This document shows, piece after piece, positions 621-49,776 of a DNA stretch of 64,000 nt. This DNA comes from Andalucia godoyi And28 (Eukaryota; Protista; Jakobida), in NCBI GenBank assembly GCA_009859145.1, contig VRVR01000013.1, forward strand, positions 329,438 to 393,437. Reading direction: 5' to 3'. Under the pieces are notes generated by a model, which searched no databases, was not told the origin of the DNA, and saw only the letters and a list, made by a program, of their open reading frames with translations. How positions within the stretch are numbered: position 1 is the stretch's first letter; each line of letters opens with the position of its first letter. Both the position numbers and the translations under genes were made by a program.

Positions 621-779
621 GCCAAGTCAAAACAAAAATAAGAACAGTAAAAACAGTTGGTCGCGGTTCGTGCCTGTTCACCTAGTAACATACACCATTA
701 TCTTTACAGAACGTGCCCAACGCAATACAGAATGGTCTGCAACATCAGACAGATAGATAAATAAGAAGACCGAGGAGGA

Positions 780-2840
780 TCAGGGACGATAGGATTCGCT
801 GCCTTCATCGGATTCAACTTCCCAAACGTCTCCTGCAATTCCGCTGCCTGCCTTGTTCAGCAGAGAAAGCAGATCCCGAACTTCATCCTGTATGAGACGG
901 ACCTCGTCTGATCGTACAGGATCCGACATGATGCTTCGGACAGTCTTGAGAGACGCCGCAATGGAATTGGTTCGATCGACAATGTCTCGAGCTTCGTTGA
1001 AGTGTCGCGCTTCCTGGTGGCACTTTGCAAGGAAAATCATCGCGCGAGCCGTCATGATGGAGCGCTCACCAAACGCGGCTTCAGTTTTTTGAACCATTTG
1101 CTGTGAAACCTCGATGGCCTTATCCAACGACCGATCTCGGCGATGCAGAGTGGCAAGAGACAGACGAATGTGGAATATCTTCTCTTCTTCATCTTGGATA
1201 TGTGCCTGGACAATATGGCTGTCCGCAATTTCGAAATGGGAAGGATTCGTGGTGTTCATAGTGCTGTGATGGTTTCCGCTTGTGCTGATGCTGCTTCTGC
1301 GGCTCCCTGGAGACGTCGCGTCCAATGAACTGGTGCCGGAATGCCGGTAAACAGCAATAATGTCTTCCCCTGCGATCATGGATACCTCCAGCATGTTATT
1401 TGCCTCGTCGAATCGTTGCACAGAGAAGCAGAGCTCCGAGCAGTCCTTTGCAGCTGCGAACAGGGACTGGAGCGATCGAACCAAAGACACCATGATTCTG
1501 TTGTACGTTTCGCGAAGTTCTGTCTCTACCTGCGGATCGTGCCGTTTAGAGGTTCGGCGCTCTGGACTCGCCAGCTCTTGCAACCTGGTGGAAATTAGAA
1601 TACTCTGCTTCTGCAGCATCTGCACGGACCTCCTGAATTCGCGACAGGACTGCCTAAAGTACTGCAATGCGTTTTCCACATGAATTACAATGCTCGAGGA
1701 GTCCTTCTTCGGCGTGGTCGTCATCAGCCGACCGGGCGTTGGCGAGGGGACTTGTGACATCTTTTCCTGCGTATCTCTGTACTTGGACCACTCGAGCATT
1801 GCGATCTCTCTGTATACCTCTCCCATGTCCATGAGGATCGACGCATGAAGTTCCGAGTCCGGATGCAGCGCATTGATTCTCGCCGCCACCGCATCGCAAA
1901 GTCCCCATGCCTTTTCAAAGAACTGCAGAGACCGCTGGTACTCGCCTTGGATCGCAAACAGCTTTCCACCGGCAAAGTAGATCGCAAACGATGGATCCCG
2001 TTTCTGTCCAGTCTGTCGACCACCACCCCCGCTCCCACAACTGCTGCTTCTGTGACTGTCCAATGCCCCAGAATCGTTGAACGCCGAGAAGGACACGGAA
2101 TCATTGGAGGACATCATCATTGACTTTCCTTCAGCAGCCGTTGCCTTTGGATACTCTGCAATCCAGTCCATTGCAGAGCGCAAACACTGGTACGCTTTGG
2201 AATAGTTGGCCAGCAGGGTATGACAAACCCCCATCGACAATAGCAGGTTGGGAATCCAGTTCACAATATCCGACTTTGCGACATCGCTTCCTTCCGGGAC
2301 GTCAAAGACAGACTGCTTTGATTTTCTTGCAGACTCTGCAGTCGGCCCAAACGATCCGGCATCATCGTCCCAGTCATCAAACTCGTCGCTCCTTTGCCTC
2401 CTGTTGTTTGGACTCGGGATGTAATCAGGATCCTTGATGATGGACGTGAAGATTTGAAAAGCAGCCTTCAAATGTTCCGAAGCCTGCGAGTTCATGGAGA
2501 ACTCCATGTAACACGCCGCAAGATCCCAGTGCGCAAGGCCCACCTGGACTGATTTTGTGCCAAATTGCACTCTGCTCAGTGCAATAATCTCGACTTTGGC
2601 GTCGCAAACCGCAGTCTTCAGCTCTTCGCGATGGCCCTCATATCTGAGTTTCTGCAGAAAAAGTTCGGAATACTCGGACAGTGCGATAATGCGCTCGCTG
2701 GGTGGAACATCTGGATGGATCATTCGACTCGACACACGGTCAATCGACGCAGCTTGTCCTTGCAAAAACGAGCTTGCAAGACGCGGACTCTGGATATACC
2801 GCTCCATCAGATTCGCAGGTCTGCTCCGCTGTGCACACAT
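780..2840 (-). CDS. TPR-repeat protein, TTC23/TTC23L-like
   Basis: Long ORF. The segment KVEIIALSRVQFGTKSVQVGLAHWDLAACY resembles the TTC23 N-terminal TPR, and further TPR-like helices follow. The start was moved to the ATG at 2840 because the ORF-track extension runs through a (GA)n repeat. Confidence 0.75.
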   Translation of the reverse strand: MCAQRSRPANLMERYIQSPRLASSFLQGQAASIDRVSSRMIHPDVPPSERIIALSEYSELFLQKLRYEGHREELKTAVCDAKVEIIALSRVQFGTKSVQVGLAHWDLAACYMEFSMNSQASEHLKAAFQIFTSIIKDPDYIPSPNNRRQRSDEFDDWDDDAGSFGPTAESARKSKQSVFDVPEGSDVAKSDIVNWIPNLLLSMGVCHTLLANYSKAYQCLRSAMDWIAEYPKATAAEGKSMMMSSNDSVSFSAFNDSGALDSHRSSSCGSGGGGRQTGQKRDPSFAIYFAGGKLFAIQGEYQRSLQFFEKAWGLCDAVAARINALHPDSELHASILMDMGEVYREIAMLEWSKYRDTQEKMSQVPSPTPGRLMTTTPKKDSSSIVIHVENALQYFRQSCREFRRSVQMLQKQSILISTRLQELASPERRTSKRHDPQVETELRETYNRIMVSLVRSLQSLFAAAKDCSELCFSVQRFDEANNMLEVSMIAGEDIIAVYRHSGTSSLDATSPGSRRSSISTSGNHHSTMNTTNPSHFEIADSHIVQAHIQDEEEKIFHIRLSLATLHRRDRSLDKAIEVSQQMVQKTEAAFGERSIMTARAMIFLAKCHQEARHFNEARDIVDRTNSIAASLKTVRSIMSDPVRSDEVRLIQDEVRDLLSLLNKAGSGIAGDVWEVESDEGSESYRP

Positions 2841-2866
2841 CTCTCTCTCTCTCTCTCTCTCTCTCT
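2840..2866. repeat. (CT)n microsatellite abutting the start codon of the TPR gene
   Basis: Direct observation. Confidence 0.95.
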
Positions 2867-4019
2867 TTGAAAAATACTCCACGTCAGACCACCCCGCCAA
2901 ACCAAACGCATTTGCAGAAGAAAACAAATACAACCCTCCACAGTCCGCTTTCCAAACGACCCGCCGTTTCATGATCGTAAGAGCAGACATTCTTGTCGGG
3001 TCATTGTCGGGTCATTTCAACTGAAAAAGCGCAGTGAAAACTGTCTGCGTTTTGTTTTATATCAATTTTTTCCACCTGATCATGTTCATTGCATTCTTAT
3101 TGAGCATTGCAAAAAATGGAAGAAATTTAATTAAGACGCCGGCATCAATGGCTGTTCCCCGCTTCGGAAGAACATGCTTGAAGCAGTGTTTGTGGATGCA
3201 ATATTGCAGGATCGCATTTGTCCAGCACCGCATCTGAACGGCCCCGAGAGTGATTATGCAAATACTCATGATCATGACGATGATGATGCAAAAGGCCGCA
3301 AAGGAGCCGCAGCAGTGGCATAGAAACAAAAGCAGAAACAGAAGCAGCAGGCACGGTTGGAATGCTGCCCAACAGGGATGGATGCTGCCGCCTATCCAAG
3401 CAGAAACCCGACGATTTGCCCAAAGCGAACGCTTGGCATTCTCCGGGTAGACAATATGAGATGTAATTATCGTTCCCCGCTCGAAACTGTATCCATTTAT
3501 ACCGTCATTTTTAAAATACGATTATAAAATCAAGAAGAAGAAAAGGAAAGGAAAGATTAAAAAGAAATCACTGCAAAAACTGGCAAAAATATCTGCTCTC
3601 ACGACAGTTGATACACACAGCTGTCAACCGTTTCATGTCCTAATATTGCAGCATCCGCAGTCCGCTTCCCTAACGACTTCTTGCGCCTACATTATACACT
3701 GAACATGCATATCTACGAATAGACATGCATATTCAAGCTTGCATCCCGTTGCCGGGAAGGGGGTAGGCCCTGTATCGAGCGGCGTAGGCGAATGCGTCAT
3801 CCCAGCGCACCCACGCCCATATTTGAATAAAAGAGTGAAACCAAAAAACCAAACCAACGAATGATAGAATAGATGGCTACGGATGCTGCGTTAAAGAGCG
3901 CCGAAAATGCGGAGCCTGTGCCACCGGCTGAATTCTGGCCGAGCGTGCGTAAGCACGAATTTCCTGTGAACCAAACGAGCCGGTGTCGGCCAGTATCGAC
4001 CGTGTCTGTTTACGTATAT

Positions 4020-4037
4020 CATGGAGACGTTGGTTAA
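4020..4037 (+). repeat. hAT terminal inverted repeat (left in window)
   Basis: CATGGAGACGTTGGTTAA, compared with the reverse complement of the other end, CAGGGAGACCCTGGTTAA. Confidence 0.92.
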
Positions 4038-4134
4038 TCGGTTAACCGGTTAACCTAATAACCAATAACCAGACTGACCTTGGGCTTGGTTACTAGTTAA
4101 AAGTGGTTACACTACGGTAGATTTCCTTTATTCG

Positions 4135-5993
4135 CTAAGAATCTGCTACATCTACGATGTCCACGAAGTCATCGCCACCATCTTCTGAAGCACTGATCTC
4201 TGTAATATCTCGCTTGATAGACGCTACCACGTCTCTCATGACACGGCGTCCATTCAATCTGATCATCAACTCAGCATCTAGCAAGTCAAAGGAGATGTTG
4301 TGTCTTCCGTCGACAAGTTGGCCTTGAACAGAGAATGTCCGTTCCACATCGGCCTGCGTGCAGCCGACTTCTGATAAAGCTAGCACAGGACCAGCGATCA
4401 GAACATCCCGATTGAAAGCTGCAGTGTCCAAAAGGAGACGAAATCATTCTCGTATTCTTCCAAACAGCCGAATGCATTCGAACGCATCCTGTACTCCGCC
4501 AATTCACGTTCTACCTGTGCCTTGATTTCCCCTCGTCGTCGTGAAAGCACAGCAGCAGGCGGGTCCTCTTTTTGAAGAGCAAATCCAAGACAAAAATCGA
4601 CAGTCTTCCGAAAAGCATTCGCTTCCAAACCTGCAATGTTGAGATCTCTGCGCTTCACTGGATCGAGAAATGCCAGAATTGTAGACAATAATGAATGATT
4701 GAGGTTTGAACTCCAGCGGGCAGTGTACGCATTGATGACCGCGTTGCAGAGTTGTATTTTCAGGGAATCTTGGGAAGCATCTCGGATCTCTGTGACTTCA
4801 CGACCTGCTTTCGCCAAGACGTCCCACAGAGAAATCGCTTGGAAAGCTTCGGCTTGCACGGTGTCCGTAGCGCAAGCAAAGGGCTTCATCGCAGTGCAGA
4901 AGGCAGTCAACTTGTTCTTCCACTCTTCAGAGCAGAACTGATTGGCTACGGAAGTACCACCTATTGCACTGGAATAGGCGTTCCAGCGATCAAGAACACG
5001 TCTTGCAGCGTTATAATGAGAGTTCCAGCGAACATCAATGGGCTTGACGATCTTCAAAGGAGTTATAGCAGGTTGAATAACCTGCACCGCATGGAAAATC
5101 TTTGCAACTTCCTGCTGTCTGAATGGTGCGAGAGATGCTGACATCTGCTGCATAAAGTCAGGAATCTGCTGGGTAATTGCGTCTTTCACAATCAACTGAA
5201 TCGAGTGTGCAGCACAGCGGACGAAAAATGCCCATGGGCGAAATTGTGCTATGTATGATTCAATCCCGCGAACGAAATTAGCTCCATTGTCAGAACAAAA
5301 GGAAACCACTGTCACCCTGCCACCGCGCTCGATGTCTTCAACAATCTCTTTTAGGATAGCACAGATCCTGTCTCCTGTTAAAGACTCTGTTAACAGAAGA
5401 CCTTTGTAGTAGTACGATTGGTTTCCCACAACAACGCAGAAATTCAGCCACGATCCGTTTGTATTGTCAGCCTGGGTCGAATCGCACATGAGACAAGCAG
5501 CGTAAGAGCTCTTCACAATTTTCTCGACCTCAGACCGCACTTCTGCTGCCAGACTCCGTACTTCGGACTTCATTGTCTGTTCCGACATATGCACACCAAA
5601 CGCTTGTCTGAAAGACTCGTTTCGCAACAACTTGTAAGACAAACGATTGTCGGCAAAAGCGAAAGCAATCAATGTTTTCCGTTCCGCTTGATTCTTCTTC
5701 ATTCGTTCAAACAATGTCGGTAAATTGGAAGACGAACCAGAAATGGTTCTCGACATTTCAACGGGAGCAGACATTGCATGGGCATGCTGCAAATGATAAG
5801 CACAATTCGAAGTTTGGAAACGAATTTGGTATGTCTTTTCATCATGTGCGCACAGCAGACATCGCGCTTGTTGGGCACCATTTACAACGAAATAGGACGC
5901 CACCCAAGAACGGCATTTGTCCGCCACCATGAATCCTTCCGTTGCAAGAAGAGCGATGAGTGCTTTCTTTCGATCGGCAGTCAAAACGGACAT
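4135..5993 (-). pseudogene. hAT transposase with a single frameshift near 4400
   Basis: ORF 5993-4398 carries a BED finger (W..YF...CLLC...HLQHAH), CDS (first D), SDNGAN (second D), the CAAH (CxxH) motif and VRWNS. The C-terminal dimerisation domain with the catalytic E (LALSEVGCTQADVERTFS) continues in another frame, 4431-4135. Confidence 0.93.
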
Positions 5994-6257
5994 TTGAGAA
6001 AGGCGGTGAAAACCGAAAAGTCACTTTTTTTGAGAATTTCGTCACTAGAAAATGGAAATGCTGGAAAACAGGACAGCAGAGATGGAAAGTCGAGCGAAGG
6101 GCTTGGTGCGATGGCAAGGAACTCAGGGCTCAGGTCCTCTTCAAATGGCGTGATCACCACATTTGGCTGATTCAATGATCTGGATTGATGCCTTCTGGCC
6201 ACAGCTAACCGGTTGTTAACCGTTAATAACCAATAACCGACTCTTCGCCGGTTAGCG

Positions 6258-6275
6258 TTAACCAGGGTCTCCCTG
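6258..6275 (-). repeat. hAT terminal inverted repeat (right in window)
   Basis: TTAACCAGGGTCTCCCTG, followed directly by the TSD ACGTATAT. Confidence 0.92.
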
Positions 6276-6676
6276 ACGTATATTCCCCCGTATATGCATG
6301 ACAATGACTTGTCATTATTCAACGGTTTCTTTTTAACATATTCATACGCCAGAAAATAGTGAGTGGAGAATAGGAATTATTACGCAACATCTACATTACA
6401 CTCGCGATCAACCGGATAAGTGCGGAATAGCGTTTCCCTAGCTCAGTGCAGTCTTTTCCTATTGTTGTATATACAGAGTTTTACTTTTCTTTTTGTTTTT
6501 ACTTTTGCTTTAACTTTCACTGTTTATTCCCCTCCGTTTTGTTCGACATCTAATAATAATAATTACGGTTATTTTTCTGTTTGGTGTTTTGGGCTCGTCG
6601 GTTCCCCTCGATTATTCATCGTCATTACCTAAACCTAAACCTTGTGCATAGTTGGAAAGAGTTGATCCGCTAGTGA

Positions 6677-10477
<3,801 letters not shown>

Positions 10478-10813
10478 CCCAGTAGCAGCATTGTGCTTCC
10501 TTTTACTATTACTAATATTAATTTTTGTAAATTCTTGCCGGAAACAGTTCGTTTTTGCACGCAGCACTGAGCTTCCCTGTGGCCTGCCGTACACGGGTAA
10601 CTAAAAAAAAGTGTCCGGGTAAATCCCGCTGCAAAACAGGCGGATTGCCTGATATGGGTGTCGTTGACAGTTTGGAAATCCGCACGATTCTCATTGCAGT
10701 CTTTTCCGTTCTTCTTCTTTTGGAGACTTTTCTAACTCGATAATCTGGATACTTGCATCGTGCTGAAAGGTTGAGAGGGCGCACGCACACACGAAGTACT
10801 CGATGCATTACCG

Positions 10814-13045
10814 ATGCTGAGTAAATCCAAGCTCGCTCCATTGCAGAAGGAAGCTGTACGCCCGCCGATTGTCCAGGCTGCGCCAGCTCAACGCAGCCAC
10901 AGACCCGCATCCGTTTCTCCACTACGGTCGACAGACAATCTGCATGGCTCTTCTTATGCTGCTGCGGAGGTATCGTCGCCACAGACCCCGGCCCCACTGT
11001 TGCCGGCGGCGTCGAAGCATCCGAGTCATGTTGTGGAGACCGACGAGCCTCCTGCGTCAGCTGTGATTGGGTTTGAGAAAGCCGACTACAGTATCATGGA
11101 AGATGATCACGAGAAGAGTGCGTCACGAGACCGTCACCCTCTCAAGGAATCCAGCCCTGCTGCCCTGCAGCGCAAGAACAGCGAAAACAACAGCAGCAAG
11201 AGCAACGACAACGACAAGGATGCGGTCGATCCTGGAAGCCGTGGAAGTGGGGGTGGTGGTGGAAATAAGAGACCCGGTCACGGATCGGGTGACACGGGCT
11301 CGCTTCCTTCGTTCTTGGAAGTTGCGTTGCAAAAGCAAAAGAACGAGTATGTGCTGCGGCCGTTCTTTCTCACATACTTTGACACGAGAGAGTTTTTGAA
11401 CTTCACGTGGAAGAACTATCGAGAAGACCACATTTTGGTGAACACGCGGTTTCTGGACTGGGAAGAAGGAGGGATGGATTCGCTTGGGAAGCTGATGTGG
11501 CTTGTGAAGTTTGCAAGCGTGTTCAGTCCCGATAGGACGAGACGGTTCATGTTGATTCGACATTTGCTGGCTTTTGTGATTACGTACTCGTTCCTGTCGT
11601 GGGAGGCTGCGTCCATTAATGCTCTCATGAACAGTTCGACGATTGGAGAAGAGTACGTTGGCATGTGGATGTTCTTGATTTACTTACCTTACTACTTCTA
11701 TCAGACCAAGCTATTCTACCGAAATTTTGACTCTCATCAGGATGTTTCCACGGAAGATGTCCTCAACGGCTTTGTAGAGCGCGACGCGGAACAGGGAGCA
11801 AGCGGAGCAAAAGCGGCCCACTTTGAAATATCGTGGTCCTTGTTGGTGCGACTGATTCGACCAGTTTGGCTGACAGAGCTTGGAAAGTTCGCTTTCAACA
11901 TGTGCGTTCTCCTGGCGACGACGGTGACGTGGCTGAGCACGGCGCTGCGTCTGTGGTACATGTACATGGCAGGCATCTTCACTGTGGATAATGTCGTGTT
12001 CACGTTGTGCATCCGACTGACATGCTTCTGGTACCTTAGCATCGTGTGCGTGCTGCAGCTTGCCTTGTACATTACGCCATTTTTTATCGTGGCATATCGT
12101 GCACGGTTCCTGATGCGAGAATTTGCGTTGCGGGACAACTACTACCATTTGCAGTACGGATTTGACGATGTCACATTCGAATTCCATTCTATTGCCACAT
12201 TCCTGCATACACTGTCGTCGAATTTGAGTTTTGCGAACAGTTCCGCGATTGTCATCATGTCCGTCCTTTCCATTGCGCTTTTCTTCAATTTTGCACAGTC
12301 CAAGTTCTTCAATGCGGATCCGTTTTTGCTCATTGCGGTCATCTTTTTGCTCATTATCGTCATGATTCTTCTTTGTGGTTGTGCGTACGCTACGTATCAC
12401 ACGCAGCGACTGACACAAGTTCTGGCCTCGGAAAGGGGTCAACTAGGACCGCGGCCGTTCCTGCTGTCCGATTCGGCTCGGAAGCACACCCATGCTGCAG
12501 AACCTGCAGCGCGATTGCAGTTTCTCCACACGAGGTCAAACAGCTACAGCAGTGAGGCTTCCTTGGAAGAGGAAGGAGATGTGGAAGCTGCTGCTGCGAC
12601 TTCAGAGGACAAGACAGCAAGCAGCGACGCAGAGTCTTCCAACATCCGTCGTCGAACGAACAAGATCATCCAGGGTACTGTGCATGAGATCGGAAGCAAG
12701 GTCAAGCAGGGCACAACGGTATTGTTTTCGCAATTTAACAAGCGGTTGCAAGGCATAAAAGGCGCGATGGGTAGCAGTGGGTCGGGTGGAAAGGCTGCGC
12801 TGGCAGATCTTTCGCAAATCAACTCTCAATTTTGGAGGGAGTACGCTCAAATGGATGTCGAAGAGCTGACACAGCGCAATGCGCAGCTTCGGCGTGACTT
12901 TGATTCGTTTGCGACATATGTGAATCTTTCCCATCCGGGTGGGAAAATCTCGGGCGTTGTCATTTCGTTCGGCTTGGTGAAGGCCATCGCGTACGGATTT
13001 GCTTCCTTGTTTACTCTCGTGTACCAGTTTGCACAGACATTTTGA
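10814..13045 (+). CDS. Multi-pass membrane protein, probable gustatory-receptor-like (7TMIC/GRL) channel
   Basis: The protein has a long hydrophilic N-terminus, about 7 hydrophobic segments and a long loop before the last helix. The C-terminus GKISGVVISFGLVKAIAYGFASLFTLVYQF resembles the GR TM7 signature ending in QF. Confidence 0.7.
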   Translation: MLSKSKLAPLQKEAVRPPIVQAAPAQRSHRPASVSPLRSTDNLHGSSYAAAEVSSPQTPAPLLPAASKHPSHVVETDEPPASAVIGFEKADYSIMEDDHEKSASRDRHPLKESSPAALQRKNSENNSSKSNDNDKDAVDPGSRGSGGGGGNKRPGHGSGDTGSLPSFLEVALQKQKNEYVLRPFFLTYFDTREFLNFTWKNYREDHILVNTRFLDWEEGGMDSLGKLMWLVKFASVFSPDRTRRFMLIRHLLAFVITYSFLSWEAASINALMNSSTIGEEYVGMWMFLIYLPYYFYQTKLFYRNFDSHQDVSTEDVLNGFVERDAEQGASGAKAAHFEISWSLLVRLIRPVWLTELGKFAFNMCVLLATTVTWLSTALRLWYMYMAGIFTVDNVVFTLCIRLTCFWYLSIVCVLQLALYITPFFIVAYRARFLMREFALRDNYYHLQYGFDDVTFEFHSIATFLHTLSSNLSFANSSAIVIMSVLSIALFFNFAQSKFFNADPFLLIAVIFLLIIVMILLCGCAYATYHTQRLTQVLASERGQLGPRPFLLSDSARKHTHAAEPAARLQFLHTRSNSYSSEASLEEEGDVEAAAATSEDKTASSDAESSNIRRRTNKIIQGTVHEIGSKVKQGTTVLFSQFNKRLQGIKGAMGSSGSGGKAALADLSQINSQFWREYAQMDVEELTQRNAQLRRDFDSFATYVNLSHPGGKISGVVISFGLVKAIAYGFASLFTLVYQFAQTF

Positions 13046-21277: not shown

Positions 21278-24200
21278 ATGTATTCAACGAAGCTTGTGGA
21301 GTTTGCTTCGCGGTTGGATGACAGGAAAAGCGACAAAAAGGTACGCATTTTCCCTTTTCGATTTCTCTCTTTTTATCTGTTTTTTATATTCATTTGCATC
21401 TCATTTGAAATGCTTCTCTGCTTGGATCGCGTCCGAAAGAGCAGCCTATTTCGTCACCGTTGTTATTATTATTATTATTTTTGTTGTTGCTGCTGCTGCT
21501 TCGGGTTCTGTTGTACATAATTTTTAATGAAAAATCACACTGAAAATGTTCATTTCCTCTCAATAGAAACTGTTGGTCGATATTCATCGTTGGTTCCTTG
21601 ATAATAAAGATGGTTTGAAAGAAGCGTTGCAGAATTCGTCTGCGGATTCACAGGAATTGGAGGTTCAGTGCGGACCACTTTTGGAGAAGATCCTGCGAGT
21701 CATTCCTTCCTTGTTGGAAGGCTCTCGCTCCGAAGACATTATCAAACTTCAAATTCTGTCGCCATTTGAGAAGATTCTCATTGCATATGTTGAGTTGTTT
21801 GCTATGGCAACCATGAAGCACCAAGTCCTCATACTGGAATGCTTGATGGGTATGTTTGGCGATCCCGGAGCATGCCTTCCTGCTGTTAGCGCACTGTGTT
21901 TCTTGGTTCGCTGCAGCGTCTCTTTTCGCGAGCGTGTCCCGTTGCAAGTCATGTATGGCATGTTAAAAGGTGCCAGAGAAGCGGTCACCAACAATCCCAA
22001 GCTCGAGCTGCGGGATGTAACGCTGCTTGTTGAGAAGCTGCTCGCTATCGTCAGAATCTATCCCGATTCGTATTTTGATTCACTCGCGGCGTTCACCGAG
22101 TCTGCCGACTCCGAGAAACTAGACTCGTCGCGTGTCGTCGGAAGACTGACCAAGTTGTGCATTGACTTGTTGAAAGCCGCAATTCCGCTGTCCTCTCACA
22201 TGACGTCACGTGGCGTTTTTGACGTTTTGCGCCTCTGTCTGGAGGTTTCGCGAAAGTTTTCTGCAATCTTTCCTCTGAGCTGCTTTTTGTTTCTGGAGAG
22301 CATTTGTGATCTGACATTTGTGAAAGAGTCGTTCGCGTTCCAAGATTTGCTCAATGACAAGCTGCTGGATGACAGGTTGATCCATGATCACTTGTTTGAG
22401 CAGTTTTGCAGCTTGCGATTCAAGCTCTCGTTTGGATCGAAAATCGTTTTTCGTTTCCTTGATCTTGATCCTGGTTCTGTTGTGCGGCTGTTTGTCAATG
22501 CCGTGGAAAAGGGATCCAATTTCGGTCGCGCTGACCATTCTCGTCTCTTGGGACGGTTTCGTGTTGCCAGCCTGCTGGAATTGTGCAGCATGCATCATCG
22601 ACATTTGCTGCGCCTGCAGGTGCCACCGAGTTCAGAGGAACACGGAATGAGTACCGCTGCTAAACGTCCGAAAAAACCGGCACCGCATTTGGTGTTTGCC
22701 TCTGAAGTCGATTTATGGCTTGCCTGCAGAACAGACGAGCGACCGCTGTCTCCCGCGGTTCAAGTTTTCTGGTATTCTGCACAGTTGTTAGCCATTCAAG
22801 ACATCCTGCAAATGACGAGATCCCATGTCCCAGACCCTTCTGATCGAGAATCCGTGTTGATTCCTCTTTTGAAAGGGTTTTTGCTGTGCCTTGAACGGTT
22901 GTGCCAGTTTCCTCCCGCATCGATTCTTGCGATGGAATCTTTACTGCTATCATTGCCGGAACTGATGCTGTGCGCGCTTGATCTCCATCGCTCCTACAGT
23001 GACGCTGTCCCGATTGTCCAGCACGGCGTTTGCTTTTCGCTGTTGTCCAATCTTCTGTATCAACTGGTGTCCGCATCTTCGTTCCTTTCGTGTTCCATTT
23101 CCCCCAGTGCGACGTTTGCTATTTTTCATTGTCTCAATATACTGTATGGCGACCGCAGTGTTTTGGAGAGTTCTCTGATTTCAGAAGCGCAAAGATTGAG
23201 TGTGATGCAGTGCGTCCTTTGTCAAGTCTGCGACAGCCCCAGTTTGCCATTGATTCAACGGTGGTTTTTGGACTCCCAGTTTTACGCTTGGATTTCGAGC
23301 CAGCTGTTTTCGCCCTGTGTTGGCTTCGATGTGGACAAGAGCGATCATTTGCCGAAGTTCCGTCGGACATTTGTTTCGGTTCTCGATCAACTGTTTTCGA
23401 AAGGCACATGTGCGGCGTTTGGATGCAACTTTCTTGTGCACATCGAAGATGATCGTGTCGATCGTGCGGCTAGTGCACTCTTTTTTCTGCCCCACGCGCA
23501 ATTCTCAGCGTTTCTTGAGCGCGTGTTCGCTTCCGACGGCGAAAAGCTGTCTGCTTTTCGGTTGATCTTCCAGAGCGCCACCAACTGGCACCAGTTGACT
23601 GTTTTGACGTTCTTCCTTCAAAACGTTGGGTTTCCCGGTCCTGATTTTGTGGATGACTATGCAAACGATAACTTGAAGGCATTGCTGAACTCTATCGATG
23701 TCTTGCTTCCGCGTGCACTGGTGCAACTGGCAGATTGCGGTGCGTTTTTCCTGTGTCCTATTCCTGGAGCCTCGCTAGAAAAAATGGAATCAGTGCTAGC
23801 CCTTTATGTTGCACGGTATGCTCATTTCATCCGAGTTGTTCGTGAAAGCCGCTCGTTTTACCGAATTTATACGTCAAAAAACGACAGCTCTATGGTCATG
23901 GAGGTTTACGCAGATGATTATGCGGATCTTTTAACAAGCAATTTGTTTGCGGTTGTGAAGGTCTTCCAGGCTGCACCATGGTTCCCCGCCTTCTGGAACA
24001 ATGTTCTTGACGCAGAGTCCAAGACAGCTGTGCTGTTTTGCCGCATGGCGCTATACATTGAAGGCGTGTCGTTACTGCTGACCAGCAGTAATGCCGCAAC
24101 ATCCGCAGTGGACGAAATTGTGGATCAGAATTTTTGGGAGGACGCCATTTCACAGTACACTTCCCGACCAAGTTTAACGTATCGTGACTGGCATGACCAC

Positions 24201-27200
24201 TGCTCATGCATCCCGACGCTCCTACTCTCTCGGTTTGTCAGCTTCGTTCTGGACTGCACGGTCGTTCGTTCGAATGTATTAAAGAGTTGGCGGCAGAGTG
24301 TCATCCGTGATTCCTTGCGCTTTGTCTTGCTGTCTTCCTCGTTTTTGAATACTGAAACATTCAAAAACATTCTTCGCCTTTCCCAGGAATTTCCTACTCT
24401 GCGCGACACAGCAACATTCCTCCCAGTTTTTGTCCACCTTTTTCCTCGCCTTCCGGACGATCCGCAGGTCCTCGATAACCTGCCGTTGGAAATTGTGCCT
24501 CACCTAAGCGCGCTGGTGGAAAGTCGCCTCGTCTCCTTCTTGCGATCGGTTCCAGTGGCCTTCTCAGTATCTGGATCCCGTTTGACTGATTCCTGCCTTT
24601 TTTTCCTCCGCCAATGCTCAAAAATAGCCTATCAGCTGGATCGATACTCCATGAATCCTCTTATTCTGGCGTCCCTTTCGGTGTCCCAGTTTGCCTTTCC
24701 CCTGCTGTTTCGGCAAGAGTTTCGACGGAACTTCCTCCTTGGTTCCGTGTCTTCTCAGTGGTTCTGTGATTTGTGTCTGAGAAACAATTTGAGACAATCC
24801 CTTGTATCCTTCCTTCCATGGCACGATTTGGATATGAATGTACTCATCGTTTGCACGCAACTTTCTGCGACCTCAGCGTATTTTTCACGGGATGCATCAT
24901 TCCAAGCCTATTCTTCTTTGATGGCAGATGCGGGTCTTTCACCCGACAGGAGCTGGTTTGGGAAGGCATACTCGTTCCTATCCAGTTTTGTGAACTCAGT
25001 TTCAAATGATGTCAGCAGATTGACTGCTGCCGACCGTGCGTATTTTCTTTGGATCTACTTCATTCGGAGCGTTGTTGGGTGGAATTTTGACACTCCGATG
25101 GTCAATTCGTTCAGACGACTTGTTCAAAAGCTACCGGCATCCGAGTCTTGTGCGTTTGCTGAGCTGTGTGTCACTGCTCTGTATTGTCTTCCTCGCGATG
25201 GGTTCTGCGTGCATTCATTTTTGCAGTCTGTCATTCTCATATTCCTCTCGCCAGAGTGTGATTCGACGGTAACCAGTGGTTCTTCAGATAGAGAATTTCA
25301 GTGCAGCTCATTGTTCGATCCCCTGATTTGCAAGCGTATGCTTTCTTGTGATTTTCAACTATTTGTTTTTCTCCCACCCGCTTTCTGCCCCGCCTCCATA
25401 ACCATCAACATCACCATCACCATCTAAGCTCTTTTATTTTCCCCTTCGCAAATTACAGAAATGTTGTCCTGGCTGATCGGAGCTCCCTCAACGGTCCTGT
25501 CGCTGCCAATCGTGAAGAAGTACCTGCAAGCACTGAATATTGTAAGCAAGACATCAGTTACACTCCGCAGTTTGATTTCTGTGTTCTCAGTGACGACGAA
25601 GTCTCCATCTCAATCGACCGTCGATGATTGCTTGCCGTTGTCAAGTGCCATAGAAAACTTCTTGGGCGTGCTTGCCGTCGTTGGTTCTTTCAAAATCGAC
25701 GTGATAAAGCCGCGTGTTTCTCGTCTCCTGACTGCATTCGAGCAGTCTGCGGACCACGTCGAAATCGCGGATCCTGCAGTGGTTTCTTGGTTTCATCGCT
25801 TGCAATCGACATGCAAGGAATTAGAATCGATTTTTGCAGACGACCTCCCGTGTTCTTCCATGTTGCAGCGGATTCGTTTTTTCGCGTCGTGCAGAATTCC
25901 CAACAACATCGCCATTCTGTCATCCAATGGGACCTTGGTGTCCTCTTCTTCTTGGAACAATCCGCATCCTCTAAGCTGGATTGTTCGTCTGGCTTTCCGC
26001 GAATTATCGCTTGTACCAGAATTCAATATGTGGGTTCAAGAAAATGGACGTGTGCAAACAGAGGTGTTTGGAATGCGTCCTCTTGACATTGGAAGTGAGT
26101 TGATGTCTCTACTGCCCTTGAACTTTCACGGATGGAGTTCCAAGATACCATTACTGATCGAGATGCTCGTCCAAGCTTCTCTGTGGTCATCGGATACTGA
26201 TGTGGAAACTAGGTTGTGTGTATGGAAGATATTAGGAAAGTCTCTTTGCAACCCCGCGCCCCCTCTTTCACCTGATATCATGGGGCACCGGGGTGTCGAT
26301 GATTTCAGATCGTTTGTCCGGCGAATTTCCAAGTGCTTGGAGGAAGGGGTGGACCATCTTCGACGATACTCTGTACCGGATTTGCGACTGCAGCGCACTG
26401 TTTTTCAAAATTGGATTGCAGATTTTGTTGCCGGGGTCTTGTTTGATTTGGGTGGGGTTTCGATGTACCACTCTTTCCGGGACGTCGCGCTATTTTCTTG
26501 GAGATGCAGTGTTCTTCTGTTTCCGTTTGTCGTGATTGAGTGTTTCCTACTGTCTTCGTCTTCATCATCTGCAGGACAAAGGGCATGGAAGCGGATTCAT
26601 GATGCCTTTGTTTTTGTAATGAAGCATTGCATCGAGCTGGCGGATGAGATTCGATTCCGGGCCGAGACAGATCCTCTTCGTCAGCAAGCGGTCATCATTG
26701 CCGAAACCTTGTCGTTTTCGAGCCATTGTTATTTCGTTTTGCAGAAATGTCAAGGAAGTCCTCCAAAAGAGTTGGCGTGGCTCTGTGGTGAGAAAGAATT
26801 GTCTCCGTGTTTTGAACTTGATTTTGATTTTGTAACACGATTCTTATTGACTGTCGGCAGGACCGCAGAAGCCTTTGCGCTGTTTGACTTTTACCAGCAT
26901 GATCACGCTTCATCCTGTGGCGGACCGTCTGTTCTGAACTACATGTTTCAGGACACAGTGCGTTCACATCAGGAGAATTCGCAATTGCTGTCTTCTGCTG
27001 TGTTGCAAGCCTATCACGACGTCCGGGAACTGCAATTCGGGATGTTCCCATCAATATCCGCAAAGTCTTTTGTGGACGCAGGCTTGCAAAAGTATATTCC
27101 ATTCACCGCAGCCTTGGCTCTAGCAGAGGAAGACGACTGTCTGCTGCTTGAAAGGCACCGACTGCTGAGTTCAGCACTCGACAAGTCTGGCAATTATTTG

Positions 27201-30200
27201 TCCCGTGATCTGTTGCTTGCCCAGCAATACTCCAGCGCAAAGGATATCTTCAATACGACCTCTGCAAAGATGTTTGAACTTGGTGTGTCGAAAGCGTTCA
27301 AGGACGCACGCGATTTCCTGGTTGTGCATTCCGAAATGTTCAAACAAACAGTCCGTTTGTCAGCTTGGAATATGCAGTCGTCCAGCGACACAAACTACTT
27401 CTTCGATGCTCGTGCACCACACTCCTCTCGCATGCTGTCTCTGGATTTGGACTCGTTCCTGTCGGCCGCTACTCCACGTGCACTCCTATCGATGATTCCT
27501 TGCTTCAAATTCGCGACGTCTGGAAGAGATGCTGAGGAAGAAGATTTGGACTGGTGCCAGCTGATCTTGGCTGCGAAAGGACTTAGTGTTCCTCCGAGTG
27601 TAATTGGCTTTTTCTGCGTCGCCGCTGCGGAATCCAATCAGATGCGTTCAGAGAGTGTTCGGCAGGCTCGCTGGTCATCAGTTGGGCTGCGAATTTTCCC
27701 GCGTTCTTCCAGTCATCTTCCCACAATCTTTACCAGATGCATGTTGCATCACTATCACTCTTCTTCTTCTTCGTCATCTTCATCTTCATCTTCATCTTCA
27801 TCTTCATCTTCATCATTGATGTCGTCGTCATCATTGACGTCGTCGTCGTCTAGTCATTATGTGATTGATTCTTCCGAGCTGACTGCCCTTGTGAGTGCGG
27901 TACCTCAGAATCGATATTCCACAATCCTGGCTTCTGGATTCAAGACGCTGTCTTTTCCGTCGCTCACAAACTCGGAATTTCTTTCGCAATACGAGAATAT
28001 GCTCAAATTCTGCGAAACTACAGTGTTTGCATTCGACGGTGTCATCTCCGATTTTTGTGGAGAGACACCATCCAGTGTCGTTGTTGCCGTCGGTCCGTTG
28101 GAGTTGCGGGGTTCGTTTTTTGCGTCGTTGAACGTATCATCAAAGTGTTTCGAATACTTTTGTGAATTGGTGCGGGAAGCAGAGTTGAGCCTTGTAGGAT
28201 CTGACATGTCCACGAGTCGCAGTTTGCGCCCGCAGTACAGAAATATGATTGCTGTTTTAGAACAGCAGGAGCGAGAAAACGCAACGGCCAGAAAAGAACT
28301 GCAGCAGAAGCAGAAGTACTTTCTGGAGTTTGTGAAAACAGAGGAGCAGAAGGAGAGGACTCTGATCGATGCATTGTTTAAGGCCCACGAACGGGCGGTA
28401 GATGCCGCCTGCATTATACTGAATCATTTCCGGCAATACGATGGTAGCGTTGCGGTGGATCGCAAAACGCACCTAGTGGTCCTGCAAGCTTCCTTTCGAG
28501 TGATCGACTTGCTGTTTCGATTTTCGCGGAAGCGATTTGTGGAGGAGTCCGTTATCTGCGCAGACGACTTCCCCAAACATGAACAAGTTTTCAAAGCTAC
28601 GTTGAGGAACATTTGTCGCAAGGTATCTGCAATTCCCCCGATCTCGCTTTCCATGCTGTGCCATCAGTTGGTGTCCAGAATACGCTCCAGCTCGTCCGAA
28701 GAGGAGCAAGTGGTGCAAGAGTGTTTGCGGCACTTGCTTCATAATGTTGTTGCGCGATACCCAGTGCAGATATTGGTTCCGCTGCTCTCCATGTCCAATG
28801 GAAATGTGAGCGACGCAGCAAAGGTTACAGGCACAAAGCAAATCCTAGATGGTTTCCGAAGCAAATCGGCACTGGCGAAGATTGTGGATGCCGTGCAGCT
28901 GTGGACTGTTGGTCTGCAAAAAACAGGGAGCATGGCGGCAGATTCTTCACGTCTTGCAGTGTCTCCGATGCTCAAAGCAGACGGGTTGCAGCTGCTCCCA
29001 GTCGTGACCCGCGACACTGGGTTTGAGCCTGAAGCTGCGACCTCGTTTGAAAAGCTTGCATCTGTGTGCATCGTCCGGTACGCGGATGGGTTTGAAGGCC
29101 TAGGGGGTGTGAATAGATCCAAAATGATCAAATGTCACGGATCGGATGGGCATGTATACAAACAGATATTGAAGTATGGCGCCGATGATCCTCGCCAAGA
29201 CGCTGTGATGGAGCAGATATTCTGCTTGATTAATCGTTTATTCTACCTTGATGATTTTGCGCGATCCAAGGCTTTTCGTGTACGCACGTATGTCGTTGTC
29301 CCTGTTTCGCCGAAATGCGGCCTGCTGGGTTTTGTCGAGAATGCAATTCCAATACTGGACTACTTGGTTGGCGGGTTTCCGAAGAATTACAAAGTTATCG
29401 TTGCCCGAAATGGAGCCACCGGAAGAGACGTGGAAATGGAATTACCGAATGCTGGTGCGCACGATCGACTTTCTGTCATGGCCAAAAAGTTCACCAACGA
29501 AAACGCGAGAGGTGCATTGAAATCGCTGTACGATGCGGGCGTAGACCCGAAATCGTACATCCCCAAGTTTCGTGAAGTGATTTCGAAGTTCCCCCCGGTC
29601 TTCCGATTCTTTTTCCACGAAATGTACAAGTCCCCAGCAGAATGGCTGTCAAGGAGGATTTCATACACACGCTCCTTGGCAGTGTCCAGCATGTTGGGGT
29701 ACATTTTGGGAGTTGGAGACCGTCACTTGCGCAACATACTGATTGATTGCTCAACGGCGGAGGTCGTGCACATCGATTTGGGAATTGCGTTTGACCAAGG
29801 TCGTCGTTTACCAGTGCCAGAGAGAGTCCCCTTTCGTCTCACACGAGATCTTGTGGACGGAATGGGAATTCTTGGAATCAATAGCGAGTTCAAACACTGT
29901 TCCAAAAAGTCGCTGTCGATCATGAGAGACAACCACGATTTAATCATGACTATTCTGAATGTTTTCGTGCACGATCCACTTTCGTCGTGGGTGCTGACCC
30001 TGGAACGAGCTTCTCGCATGCAGAACCAGGGGCTGAGCAGCAAAGGAGAAAACAGGACGGGAAAGTCGTCCGAGACCAGTTCTCCGTCGCCGACGACACA
30101 CGCGGATGGGACAGCCGGTCCTGAGATTGACTCCGGGAAGAGCGCCTCGATCGTTCTGATTGAAACATCCAGAAAGTTGCAGGGTATGGAAACGATGCGA

Positions 30201-30299
30201 CAGCTGACCGTGGAAGAGCAAGTGGACAACGTCGTCGCACGAGCCACTGCTGTGGACAACATCGGGGCGATGTATTACGGATGGGGCGGCTGGCTTTAG
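21278..30299 (+). CDS. ATM: ATM/Tel1 PIKK kinase (3 exons: 21278-21340, 21567-25335, 25459-30299; about 2890 aa)
   Basis: Kinase motifs DPRQDAVMEQIF and GVGDRHLRNILID...VHIDLGIAFDQG...PERVPFRLTRD, with a FATC end (GAMYYGWGGWL). Introns 21341-21566 (phase 0) and 25336-25458 (phase 1) join the two long ORFs in frame, 8673 nt in total. Confidence 0.9.
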
Positions 30300-47481: not shown

Positions 47482-49776
47482 CTAACAAATGTACTTTTTC
47501 AAGACGATTGCCTGCGCAACGGACCACTGATACTTTCGGGCATGCTCTCGAATCACAAACGGTAAGTCGCGACGCTCACACAGAGAGAATCCTCGGTCTC
47601 TGAGGGCCTGGACGACCGCATCCGACGTTTCAACTGCATGACCTTGTTCGTCATAAAATCCTCCCATCCATTCTCGCTTCGGCGTGAACTGCTCAAGCCA
47701 GGTGAACGGTGAGGTCAGGACAAGCACGCCTCCAGGGGCCACCAATGCAGCCAAGCGATCAAGCATCATACCGGGCGAATGTACCCGGTCGACGAGGTTT
47801 GCAGCCAACAATGCATTCACAGTACCTCCGATATCCTTGGGGTCCAGCAGACAGGCATCGCCTTGTTGGAAATGCACTGTCCGCGAAGCGTCCGCCAGCG
47901 CCGACTTGAGATCATCGTCCAGTTCGCGGCTAATCGAGGTTGCGATTTCGCCTTGTTCAATTCGTCGGAAAGAGGCGGAACGAGATTGCAATACCTGCTG
48001 ACACGCTTTCACAAATGCGTGAGAATAGTCAATTCCAATCGAATGACCAAAGTATCGCGCCATTTCAAGAGTGGAGCGGCCAACCGCACAGCCAAGATCC
48101 AAAGCGCGAAGATCTGCGGTGTCCACACCAGTGTGCTCTCCATACTTCACAAACATTTGCACAAGAAGATCGCCGCAGCGCTTGGGAAACTGCAAGGCAC
48201 TTTTCGGCCCGAATGGATACGGCATAATGTCATCGTCTGATCCATAATGGAACAACATGTACTCATCTACAAGCTTCTGTGTTTCGTAGATATTCTCGTC
48301 TTGTTCCTTGGTGCTCTGAGACATTTCGGTTGCAGCATTCAGTCGCCCCGTCTCCACTTCCTGCGCAGTCATTTCACGAGCAATGCGGAAGCCAGCATGT
48401 TGATGAAAATGGCGTCGGAAAGCATACCGTGCATACCCAGACGCTTCATTTCCGGTGGATACCCAGCTGCCTCCAACAATGATATTGTGTTTTCCGTCAA
48501 AGCACGGAGTAGAGAAGTCCTCGTACAGCTCATGCGTCCGGAAACCGGGGAACGGCTGATTGTCTGTTTCCGTCCAGCACCAAACATTTCCAAACACGTC
48601 GTACACTCCATGTTCGGTGGGAGCATGCATGTTCACAGGAGTGGATGATGTATATCGCACCATGAAATTGGCATCAAAGTTTGCTTGACAAGAAACGTCA
48701 GAAAGCGCACCTCTGGAGACGGGAAGTTTCGAGATCGGTCGCATTGCATGGTGCTCTGCCTCGGTGATGAGGCGGAAGTCGCTGGCCGGATTCTCAACGC
48801 TGGTTCGCCACTTCGCATACGCAGATGCTTCCAGATAGTTGACTTCGACGGGCCACGTCAATGGCAGATCAATTTCATCCCACATTAAGCGCAGCTTGAA
48901 ACCAGTTTCCGCGTCCACAGACGGTACCCAGAATAATGGATGGCAAGACTTGTTGGAGGAACTCTTGAACTGGACCCAACCCCAGCCTTCGGATGTCCAA
49001 TACCCAGGATCTTGGTACCCACCCGCATTCACAAATTCCAGAAACTCGGCATTTGTGATGTAGAACTGGGACACAAGAAAAGGCCGGATGGATTCTATGC
49101 GAGTTCCGTATTCGACGTCCCACCCATACAACGGGAAGGAATAGTCCTTTCCGAGCCGAACGACTTGTCCAGGAATCCTGACCAGCTGATTTCGCAGCGG
49201 TTGCTGCGAGTCGTCCGGGCTCTTGGACGATGGGCCATATTTTGCCCACGCCGGCCGTTTGACGCAGTGGATCGGCAACTGGCGAATGAGAACGGAAGAC
49301 GTCTCGTAGTGAATCCGCTCGTGCTCCATTCCCATCATGACCACCCATTCCTTTGAATCCCATCGCACAGGCTTCTTCCAGTCAAATGACTCGATCTGCG
49401 CAATGACCATCTCGCGCACAGTGTCGCGATACTTCCAAACAGACGATGCGGGGACTCTATCGAGCTTTGTGTCCTGCGTCAAGTCATCCCACGACATTTC
49501 GTCCACCCCGACCTCAAAATCACGTTCATACTGCTCGTTGATCGGCGCCGCAAGACATCCCGCTCGGCGGAACTTCACTGCATAAAACACCGCAGTGTGG
49601 CCAAGATAAAAGATGAGCTTACGACGAAGCCGATCGGGCTGCATGTACAGAACATCATCCGATGCAAGCGTTCGGAAGAGATCTTCGTACAGGTCGTATG
49701 TGTTCAGGAAATACGCCTTGACGTTGTCGCAGCTGAGCTGATTCAAGTCCAGTCCGGGGAGAGACAACTGCTTCAT
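47482..49776 (-). CDS. ovoA: 5-histidylcysteine sulfoxide synthase/methyltransferase OvoA (ovothiol biosynthesis)
   Basis: Motifs LIFYLGHTAVFY, GVDEMSWDDL and the Fe-binding HERIHYE, followed by an FGE-sulfatase domain and a C-terminal SAM methyltransferase (LDLGCAVGRS...REHARKYQW). Confidence 0.93.
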   Translation of the reverse strand: MKQLSLPGLDLNQLSCDNVKAYFLNTYDLYEDLFRTLASDDVLYMQPDRLRRKLIFYLGHTAVFYAVKFRRAGCLAAPINEQYERDFEVGVDEMSWDDLTQDTKLDRVPASSVWKYRDTVREMVIAQIESFDWKKPVRWDSKEWVVMMGMEHERIHYETSSVLIRQLPIHCVKRPAWAKYGPSSKSPDDSQQPLRNQLVRIPGQVVRLGKDYSFPLYGWDVEYGTRIESIRPFLVSQFYITNAEFLEFVNAGGYQDPGYWTSEGWGWVQFKSSSNKSCHPLFWVPSVDAETGFKLRLMWDEIDLPLTWPVEVNYLEASAYAKWRTSVENPASDFRLITEAEHHAMRPISKLPVSRGALSDVSCQANFDANFMVRYTSSTPVNMHAPTEHGVYDVFGNVWCWTETDNQPFPGFRTHELYEDFSTPCFDGKHNIIVGGSWVSTGNEASGYARYAFRRHFHQHAGFRIAREMTAQEVETGRLNAATEMSQSTKEQDENIYETQKLVDEYMLFHYGSDDDIMPYPFGPKSALQFPKRCGDLLVQMFVKYGEHTGVDTADLRALDLGCAVGRSTLEMARYFGHSIGIDYSHAFVKACQQVLQSRSASFRRIEQGEIATSISRELDDDLKSALADASRTVHFQQGDACLLDPKDIGGTVNALLAANLVDRVHSPGMMLDRLAALVAPGGVLVLTSPFTWLEQFTPKREWMGGFYDEQGHAVETSDAVVQALRDRGFSLCERRDLPFVIREHARKYQWSVAQAIVLKKYIC

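Follow-up and report, generated by a model that had tools for sequence, protein, structure and literature searches.

The seven-transmembrane ion channel (7TMIC) superfamily holds the insect odorant and gustatory receptors (ORs and GRs), animal and protist GRLs and plant DUF3537 proteins. For a long time its origin was obscure. Members have since been described in protists, plants and prokaryotes and, as PHTF, in humans. Thousands are already on record from all three domains of life (bioRxiv 10.1101/2023.08.30.555482). Conservation in these proteins is concentrated in TM7, whose C-terminal half carries a motif defined as (T/S)Yhhhhh(Q/K/E)(F/L/M); this motif was termed 'diagnostic, but not definitive' by its authors, and accepted members retain one to three of its positions (PMC7746228). 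From Discoba, the literature consulted describes kinetoplastid 7TMICs only, found by fold alone. In the same literature we found no reported function for any non-animal member of the superfamily.

Here we describe a gene of the jakobid Andalucia godoyi, located in a 64-kb stretch of genomic DNA (64,000 nucleotides, hereafter the window), whose product is probably a divergent member of this superfamily; we put the probability of this reading at roughly 60%.

Gene model and predicted topology

The ORF proposed in the initial annotation was borne out by the ORF list, which gives a 743-aa frame with an ATG start at 10814..13045 on the plus strand of the window. The source was likewise correctly called a protist, since the 743-aa protein is found exactly on NCBI contig VRVR01000013.1 (assembly GCA_009859145.1), and VRVR00000000 is the accession of the A. 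godoyi genome (PMC7050145). The ATG is the earliest one after an upstream in-frame stop ending at 10774. The features discussed below are as follows (all positions are those of the window).

10814..13045, plus strand: candidate 7TMIC/GRL gene, a complete intronless ORF of 743 aa plus a TGA stop
10814..11476, plus strand: N-terminal region, aa 1-221, hydrophilic, low-complexity and predicted to be cytoplasmic, without Pfam match
11477..11533, plus strand: candidate TM0 re-entrant segment, aa 222-240, SLGKLMWLVKFASVFSPD, from permissive hhalign
11543..11611, plus strand: TM1, aa 244-266, from hydropathy, with an R/K-rich flank before and an acidic, K/R-free loop after
11654..11710, plus strand: TM2, aa 281-299, VGMWMFLIYLPYYFYQT, a hydrophobic stretch and AF2 helix, in keeping with the charge layout
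11885..11956, plus strand: TM3, aa 358-381, from hydropathy, preceded by a long, putatively cytoplasmic IL1 helix
11987..12130, plus strand: long TM4, aa 392-439, ITPFFIVAYRARFLMREF, membrane span plus predicted cytoplasmic extension
12164..12292, plus strand: long TM5, aa 451-493, predicted cytoplasmic extension plus membrane span, from hydropathy
12320..12439, plus strand: long TM6, aa 503-542, membrane span plus predicted cytoplasmic extension
12440..12856, plus strand: IL3 insert, aa 543-681, long, hydrophilic and predicted to be intracellular
12857..12931, plus strand: TM7a, aa 682-706, a putative cytoplasmic helix (AF2 DSSP) followed by an HPGGK break
12941..13030, plus strand: TM7b, aa 710-739, GKISGVVISFGLVKAIAYGFASLFTLVYQF, candidate pore helix with an invariant K723
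13004..13030, plus strand: TM7 motif, S731-L732-FTLVY-Q738-F739, from hhalign column mapping onto the trimmed Benton alignment

An exhaustive HMMER search of 1.84 billion representative proteins returned only two relatives, a truncated metagenome ortholog (L002) and a 459-aa EukProt transcript (P0003), giving a family of three sequences with the Andalucia protein included. No paralog from any source was found among these representatives, nor among the six-frame ORFs of the 64-kb window, and the window has no further gene in common with the metagenome contig. Word-indexed searches with the whole protein, its core or the three-sequence profile gave nothing beyond the query itself or P0003, and a family-profile scan of metagenomes gave no match.

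The ORF is real. Its C-terminal block is 61, 77 and 33% identical to L002 at the first, second and third codon positions, respectively (second > first >> third), and because of this pattern we conclude that the gene is under purifying selection. A spurious ORF or mis-assembled gene model, for which the sole argument is that about 45% of the 743-aa protein is low-complexity or disordered, is effectively refuted by the length of the frame (2.2 kb) in an intron-poor genome, by conservation at the protein level with the codon-position pattern above, and by the full-length transcript homolog held in EukProt.

Hydropathy analysis reveals hydrophobic stretches at aa 244-266, 281-299, 356-380, 384-430, 470-493, 503-527 and 711-739, the highest peak being that of TM6 (3.43); TM2 falls below the scan threshold of 1.3 and was read from the sequence itself. 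The approximately seven TM segments first noted are therefore recovered if aa 384-430 is one long helix, while the count rises to eight if that stretch is split. An eight-span layout would place K/R-rich loops on the outside, with 26 loop K+R residues there, against the positive-inside rule. The second half of TM4 contains only about 12 hydrophobic residues ahead of R-A-R, and the AF2 model, of low confidence, has one 46-residue helix at aa 394-439 (DSSP). The long TM4 of NvecGRL1 is known to be mis-predicted as two spans. With aa 392-439 taken as one long helix, hydropathy and AF2 DSSP together give seven helices.

In the same low-confidence models, TM5 and TM6 form helices of 47 and 40 residues (aa 451-497 and 503-542), the TM3 area is a single helix at aa 330-389, and the last helix is split; P0003 is alike in its long TM4-TM6 and split last helix. 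Counting K+R residues no more than 15 aa from the membrane gives 10 inside and 1 outside in the window protein, compared with 12 and 4 in P0003. Outer loops EL1-3 measure 14, 10 and 9 aa in the window protein and 16, 8 and 6 aa in P0003, against inner loops IL1-3 of 58, 54 and 182 aa and 71, 55 and 50 aa, so that the inner loops exceed the outer ones in length in both proteins, as is expected of 7TMICs. Charge distribution fits a seven-helix layout, with an N-in/C-out orientation predicted from charge, and the helix lengths in the low-confidence models would agree with long TM4-TM6 and a split TM7.

The long N-terminus and the long hydrophilic loop before the last helix, both noticed at the outset, are indeed present. 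The former spans 243 aa before TM1, is hydrophilic and low-complexity with 31 K+R and 31 D+E, has a pLDDT below 50 in its modelled part and is missing from the shorter homolog P0003. The latter covers 182 aa (aa 528-709) with 22 K+R; its insert, also at a pLDDT below 50, has a counterpart of only about 25 aa in P0003. At 743 aa the protein is longer than the 350-500 aa or so regarded as typical of the superfamily; once the N-terminal extension and the IL3 insert are subtracted, a core of about 417 aa remains, and P0003 has 459 aa. This length range is a loose one, since the accepted Vitrella GRL3-5 (Benton supplementary file) are visibly much longer.

Profile similarity to the superfamily

As a reference we used the 25 GRL, OR, GR and DUF3537 sequences of the superfamily as aligned by Benton et al. 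2020. The three-member profile matched it with an hhalign probability of 86.9% and an E value of 4.2e-6 over 49 ungapped columns that in each profile lie at the C-terminal end and that cover TM7a-TM7b only. When compared with 11 untrimmed microbial GRLs (probability 86%, E 5.1e-6), the match reached from TM6 to TM7b, with TM6 aligned to GRL TM6. The real hhalign score of 47.6 is well separated from those of the reversed profile (15.6), of 120 column shuffles (27.2 at most) and of the top off-register alternative (29.2). Jackknifing over eight groups left the register unchanged (E 1.6e-6 to 5.1e-5), and each family member alone recovered the same TM7 register. A GRL HMM ranked the Andalucia ORF first of 348 six-frame window ORFs (hmmsearch E 1.8e-5; next 0.037), with 23.7 bits versus 13.5 at most in hydropathy-class-preserving shuffles, none of 3000 reaching the real score.

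Nearly all of this signal comes from the unicellular GRLs, which alone in the profile gave an E value of 5.2e-6; animal and plant members only gave the right register with an E value of 0.09. As a rough yardstick, leaving out one accepted GRL group at a time gives E values of 1e-11 to 1e-33, which are biased by columns having been trimmed together.

The last helix of the protein ends ...SLFTLVYQFAQTF. The ending quoted in the initial annotation is present, with four more residues, AQTF, between it and the stop. The motif S731-L-FTLVY-Q738-F739 is in register with Orco T-Y-FMVLV-Q-L and matches at three of the four motif positions, F739 falling at the place of the Orco gate leucine. It is not an exact T-Y-h5-Q-F, the motif tyrosine being a leucine here; the two homologs keep two of the four positions. 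Within the family, conservation centres on TM7a/7b, as it does in the 7TMIC literature, and TM7a, with an invariant D-x-D...Y, is the most conserved block of the three homologs.

Outside TM7, a permissive hhalign alignment keeps TM0 to TM7 in collinear order. It places candidate TM0 on the GRL 'h..hh+hhGh' segment preceding TM1 and, with low confidence, TM5 DDVTFEFHSI on the GRL 'RREHxxL' segment. Candidate TM0 by itself is weak, its on-diagonal E value of 0.028 not exceeding the null, and with TM7 removed the TM0-TM6 region gave E values of 0.01-0.04, which scrambled controls equalled. In the reverse search, the family HMM put no GRL sequence above decoys. A TM4 motif picked by eye, Pro422 to Phe437 (+15, as in GRL 'WIFP...RF'), was dropped as hhalign chose another register. 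Significant similarity to known members covers about 50 residues of TM7a/7b and is not reciprocal. The GR/OR homology first suggested is supported in part, by that region and by the charge layout, with no significant similarity detected outside TM7.

Pfam hmmscan up to E = 10, run on the whole protein, its core, its last 101 aa and P0003, gave no relevant family, with 7tm_6 (PF02949), 7tm_7 (PF08395) and DUF3537 (PF12056) all unmatched, and phmmer and profile hmmsearch gave no relevant match among PDB sequences. The AF2 models built from the three-sequence alignment are unusable (window protein: pLDDT 42.5, pTM 0.24; P0003: pLDDT 45.2, pTM 0.26); Foldseek against the PDB with these models gave no match at E <= 0.001 and no Orco, OR or GR, the matches being noise. 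The Andalucia case illustrates that Pfam and AlphaFold miss such members when the family is tiny.

Identity and a proposed mechanism

A different view takes the protein for a polytopic membrane protein restricted to its lineage and of another or unknown fold (for example, a transporter or a structural protein), with a TM7a/7b that resembles that of GRLs by convergence or chance. The lack of significant similarity beyond TM7, the reverse search, the three unmatched Pfam families, a fold left unconfirmed by models at pLDDT 42-45, the eight-segment reading allowed by hydropathy and a family of three sequences among 1.84 billion representatives all speak for it. We nevertheless consider it unlikely. 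The TM7 match is residue-specific, as none of the 3000 hydropathy-preserving shuffles reproduced it, and it is ungapped over 49 columns, placed at the extreme C-terminus of both profiles and stable to the jackknife. The predicted topology, the loop asymmetry and, in the low-confidence models, the long TM4-TM6 and split last helix are specific 7TMIC features, the permissive alignment keeps the order TM0 to TM7, and eight spans would bring the 26 loop K+R residues outside. No competing Pfam family or PDB sequence was matched either. Membership of the 7TMIC superfamily is the reading we prefer. Since hmmscan matched no 7tm family at E values up to 10, the protein is best treated as a candidate member only and not classified among the GRs or ORs proper.

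As a divergent, single-copy 7TMIC member, the gene product would have a disordered cytoplasmic N-terminus and a short re-entrant TM0, followed by seven helices in an N-in/C-out arrangement whose outer loops are very short, the TM1-6 fold being presumed from that of the superfamily. The cytoplasmic extensions of TM4-TM6 would form, together with TM7a, the 'anchor' where subunits meet, and the C-terminal TM7b may line the pore of a putative tetramer. By analogy with Orco and GRs, such a tetramer could act as a cation channel, TM7b carrying at its outer end a hydrophobic gate with F739 at the place of the Orco gate leucine. Channel activity and tetramer formation are both extrapolated from these relatives, and the ligand-gated chemosensory role originally suggested is a guess drawn from the insect receptors.

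Chemoreceptor repertoires usually expand. The Andalucia gene is single-copy, as neither the window nor the 1.84 billion representatives contain a paralog, and a protein with the 7TMIC fold could instead serve, as may the PHTF and DUF3537 branches, as an intracellular or organellar channel or as a housekeeping scaffold. The N-terminal and IL3 regions, both long, disordered and cytoplasmic by prediction, suggest regulation and are in line with such a role, and the literature consulted gives no function for PHTF and raises convergence as a caveat for structural matches. The TM7 motif, in contrast, is nearest to the GRL branch closest to animal receptors (Thecamonas GRL1-3 and Vitrella GRL1/2), and we regard such a role other than that of a surface chemoreceptor as less likely than not.

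Comparison with known systems

The plant and green-algal DUF3537 proteins share a long intracellular loop 3 with the Andalucia protein, a trait of DUF3537 noted in the literature. Their TM7 aligns in the same register, but the green group alone gives an hhalign E value of 0.1, which is not significant.

With insect Orco, ORs and GRs (7tm_6/7tm_7; for example, 6C70), the Andalucia protein appears to share the N-in/C-out seven-helix layout predicted here, short outer loops and, as judged from low-confidence models, long TM4-TM6 and a split TM7. The S/T, Q and F/L of the TM7 motif are kept, whereas the motif tyrosine is a leucine in Andalucia; the insect receptors form a large repertoire, unlike the single-copy Andalucia gene.

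The kinetoplastid 7TMICs (Leishmania and Trypanosoma GRL1; Benton & Himmel 2023) also belong to Discoba, carry a long cytoplasmic N-terminus ahead of the 7TM core and, like the Andalucia protein, were missed by ordinary sequence searches. They differ in carrying N-terminal repeat domains, described as MORN (PMC9998090) and as WD40 (2023 preprint), whereas Pfam detects no domain in the Andalucia N-terminus. Their C-termini (...AAMTAICYQLGRAIYR, ...IATIHVYFAAVTRFADTGGR), compared by eye only, are unlike that of Andalucia, and the kinetoplastid proteins were assigned by fold. Tentatively, and with less than even confidence, we propose that the Andalucia protein and its two relatives represent an unrecognised, jakobid-centred clade of GR-like ('Class-A') 7TMICs, which would keep the animal-type TM7 motif and an invariant pore-helix lysine and would be distinct from the kinetoplastid clade. 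If so, early Discoba would have had two different 7TMIC lineages, and functional work could draw on a GR-like channel encoded by a single-copy, intronless gene in a free-living flagellate that branches deeply.

More generally, the Andalucia protein would extend by one protist lineage a family whose members are already described throughout the eukaryotes. A jakobid protein in which a GR-type TM7 can still be recognised would close a gap in taxon coverage and lend modest weight to the view that the GR-like branch is older than the divergence of the main eukaryote groups. The relevance to the deep origin of the family claimed at first is modestly supported if the protein is a member, on a theme that published work already covers (bioRxiv 10.1101/2023.08.30.555482); the overall picture is unchanged and no function follows from it.

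The closest described systems are the unicellular GRLs (Benton, Dessimoz & Moi 2020; Thecamonas trahens GRL1-3 and Vitrella brassicaformis GRL1/2). These align over their full length with the superfamily, while the Andalucia protein does so over TM7 only and has in addition the 243-aa N-terminal extension and the 182-aa IL3; pairwise BLAST and HMMER comparisons found no similarity between the two. Both are intron-poor protist genes, and their TM7a-loop-TM7b aligns ungapped, with 12 of 49 positions identical between TtraGRL1 and the Andalucia protein (counted by hand on the alignment). They have in common the pattern G-x-(K/R)-(I/V)-x-G-x-(V/L)-I-(S/T)-F ... S-L-(F/Y)-x-L-x-x-x-F, together with a very short C-terminal tail and a lysine in the middle of TM7b that is offset by one position.

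Gene, neighbours and relatives

The candidate member of the seven-transmembrane ion channel superfamily (7TMIC, which includes insect odorant and gustatory receptors, the GR-like proteins or GRLs, and plant DUF3537) is encoded exactly on contig VRVR01000013.1 of GCA_009859145.1:

10814..13045, + strand: candidate 7TMIC/GRL ORF, ATG start, 743 aa

The accession VRVR00000000 belongs to the nuclear genome of Andalucia godoyi, a compact genome (~20 Mb) in which the majority of genes have no introns (PMC7050145). The other genes of the window are ordinary eukaryotic ones (TPR/IQ, WD40, Rit1, PIKK kinase, ataxin-10, GLE1 and DEAD helicase), and the protist host named in the initial annotation is borne out, A. 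godoyi being a jakobid (Discoba). The ATG is the earliest downstream of an in-frame stop whose end is at 10774. From the nucleotide identity with a metagenome ortholog over the C-terminal block (61% at first, 77% at second and 33% at third codon positions), it is evident that the gene is real; dN over this block is 0.41 and dS is saturated.

The upstream neighbour (6677-10477, +, 1266 aa) combines TPR repeats with several calmodulin-binding IQ motifs and has a pure (CAA)39 run at 8540-8656, coding for 39 glutamines. A 1284-aa ORF with no Pfam match (21573-25427, +) and a 1612-aa PIKK ORF with HEAT_ATR, PI3/PI4 kinase and FATC (25461-30299, +) share one reading frame, split by a lone TAA at 25425-25427, downstream of which come a pyrimidine tract and CAG; 21573-30299 (+) is probably a single ATR-like gene of ~2900 aa, broken by a short intron or by an assembly error. 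The 795-aa product of 47482-49869 (-) has the domain order DinB_2, FGE-sulfatase, SAM-methyltransferase, which is the architecture of OvoA (ovothiol biosynthesis). Since DUF659 is typical of hAT-transposase-derived proteins, the 531-aa ORF carrying this domain at 4398-5993 (-) may be a transposase gene, domesticated or resident. The sole recognisable domain of the 2225-aa ORF at 54841-61518 (+) is a C-terminal mannose-6-phosphate receptor/ATG27-like module (aa 2114-2177).

For the 743-aa protein, neither Pfam (up to E = 10) nor the PDB sequences gave a match, and word-indexed searches over 5.8 billion proteins recovered nothing other than the query itself or P0003, a complete EukProt transcript (459 aa). 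Scanned exhaustively with HMMER, 1.84 billion representatives yielded two relatives: P0003, with 26-31% identity over the entire hydrophobic core and without either the N-terminal extension or the long loop, and P0002, a JGI metagenome fragment with 57% identity over the C-terminal 82 aa, whose reading frame extends to the contig edge and carries the homology back as far as aa 542. A metagenome scan for further relatives found none. In this three-member family, conservation is concentrated in the final 90 residues. The metagenome contig with the truncated ortholog (L002, JGI 3300042934) has no other gene in common with the window and hence no synteny with it; on the strand opposite the ortholog it carries a gene of >3000 aa (670-6611, -) with a weak DUF4470 match only.

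Predicted topology

Hydropathy analysis gave a hydrophilic N-terminus of 243 aa, hydrophobic stretches at aa 244-266, 281-299, 356-380, 384-430, 470-493 and 503-527, and then a 182-aa hydrophilic loop before the final hydrophobic helix (aa 711-739). The long N-terminus, hydrophobic segments, long loop and ending had thus been described accurately from the sequence, save that the C-terminus (...GGKISGVVISFGLVKAIAYGFASLFTLVYQFAQTF) continues for four more residues past YQF. In a seven-helix N-in/C-out layout, a count of Lys plus Arg up to 15 residues from the membrane gives 10 inside versus 1 outside for the window protein, and 12 versus 4 for P0003; the outer loops of the window protein are 9-14 aa long and the inner ones 54-182 aa.

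The segment at aa 384-430 could be drawn as one span or two; we favour a short outer turn and then a single long TM4, since the second half of the segment has only ~12 hydrophobic residues before R-A-R, a low-confidence AF2 model draws a single 46-residue helix, K/R-rich loops fall outside in an eight-span layout, and the same mis-prediction, of a long TM4 as two spans, has been described for Nematostella GRL1 (PMC7746228). Both low-confidence AF2 models draw TM4, TM5 and TM6 with ~40-47 residues each and the last helix in two pieces, predicted lengths in keeping with the anchor domain and split TM7 by which 7TMICs are described. These models, from 3-sequence alignments, are unusable (pLDDT 42.5 and pTM 0.24 for the window protein; 45.2 and 0.26 for P0003), and Foldseek against the PDB returned noise only. 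Fold is the defining feature of the superfamily; membership is here put forward as a probable reading.

Profile match at the C-terminus

The reference set comprised 17 published microbial GRL sequences and a 359-column trimmed superfamily alignment (supplementary files, Benton et al. 2020), of which the first 25 sequences were used (fungal, Thecamonas, Protostelium, Vitrella, green algal, Arabidopsis, Orco, Gr64a and 4 other animal GRLs). By hhalign, the three-member family matched 11 untrimmed microbial GRLs with a probability of 86% (E 5.1e-6, TM6 to TM7b aligned), and the 25-sequence alignment with 86.9% (E 4.2e-6, score 47.6) over 49 ungapped columns reaching the C-terminus in both profiles. 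Against this score of 47.6, the reversed profile gave 15.6, 120 column shuffles at most 27.2 and the best off-register alternative 29.2. The register was unchanged on leaving out any of 8 groups (jackknife E 1.6e-6 to 5.1e-5) and was recovered by every family member on its own. When the superfamily-alignment HMM was run against the 348 six-frame window ORFs of at least 80 aa, the protein came top (E 1.8e-5, HMM positions 306-357; runner-up E 0.037). For aa 655-743 the real score was 23.7 bits, versus a best of 13.5 in 3000 shuffles that kept the hydrophobic/polar/charged pattern; with no shuffle near the real score, the match is residue-specific, beyond a mere helix at the end.

Other comparisons argue against membership. 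With TM7 cut from both profiles, TM0-TM6 alone gave nothing above scrambled controls (best on-diagonal E 0.03-0.04, top match overall off-diagonal), and in the reverse search the family HMM put no GRL sequence above decoys; TM0 through TM7 line up collinearly in a permissive alignment, which we grade as weak evidence. A divergent 7TMIC is the likeliest reading, to which we assign a probability of roughly 0.6. Less likely is the main rival reading, an unrelated membrane protein specific to the lineage, whose C-terminal helix pair would be convergent. Against animal and plant members only, the register was correct with E 0.09, meaning that the tie to insect receptors passes through protist GRLs.

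[quoted passage not shown] Identities counted from the alignment over the 49-column block are 12/49 with Thecamonas GRL1 and 10/49 with Trichoplax GRL1.

Putative channel and known 7TMICs

As a divergent 7TMIC, the protein would form a channel of four subunits joined via cytoplasmic extensions of TM4-6 and via TM7a, with TM7b lining the central pore and a hydrophobic gate close to its outer end. Regulation from the cytoplasmic side would fall to the long disordered N-terminus and to intracellular loop 3. The unusual mid-TM7b lysine, K723, is invariant in the three-member family, and Thecamonas GRL1 and GRL3 have a lysine one position off. The proposed chemosensory role stays a guess, since we found no function reported for non-animal members in the 7TMIC literature consulted on the superfamily, and no paralog of the protein among the 1.84 billion representatives.

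7TMICs are known from fungi, Apusozoa, Amoebozoa, chromerids and green algae (PMC7746228) and from trypanosomatids, flies and humans (PMC9998090), with thousands of sequences over eukaryotes, bacteria and archaea (bioRxiv 10.1101/2023.08.30.555482). The published texts searched make no mention of jakobids or Andalucia. Given the wide distribution of 7TMICs, the protein is a weakly supported addition to a known superfamily and not a new kind of system. The kinetoplastid proteins have N-terminal repeat domains and C-termini that, by eye, look unrelated to that of the window protein, whose TM7 is closest to the Thecamonas/Vitrella GRL1-type branch.
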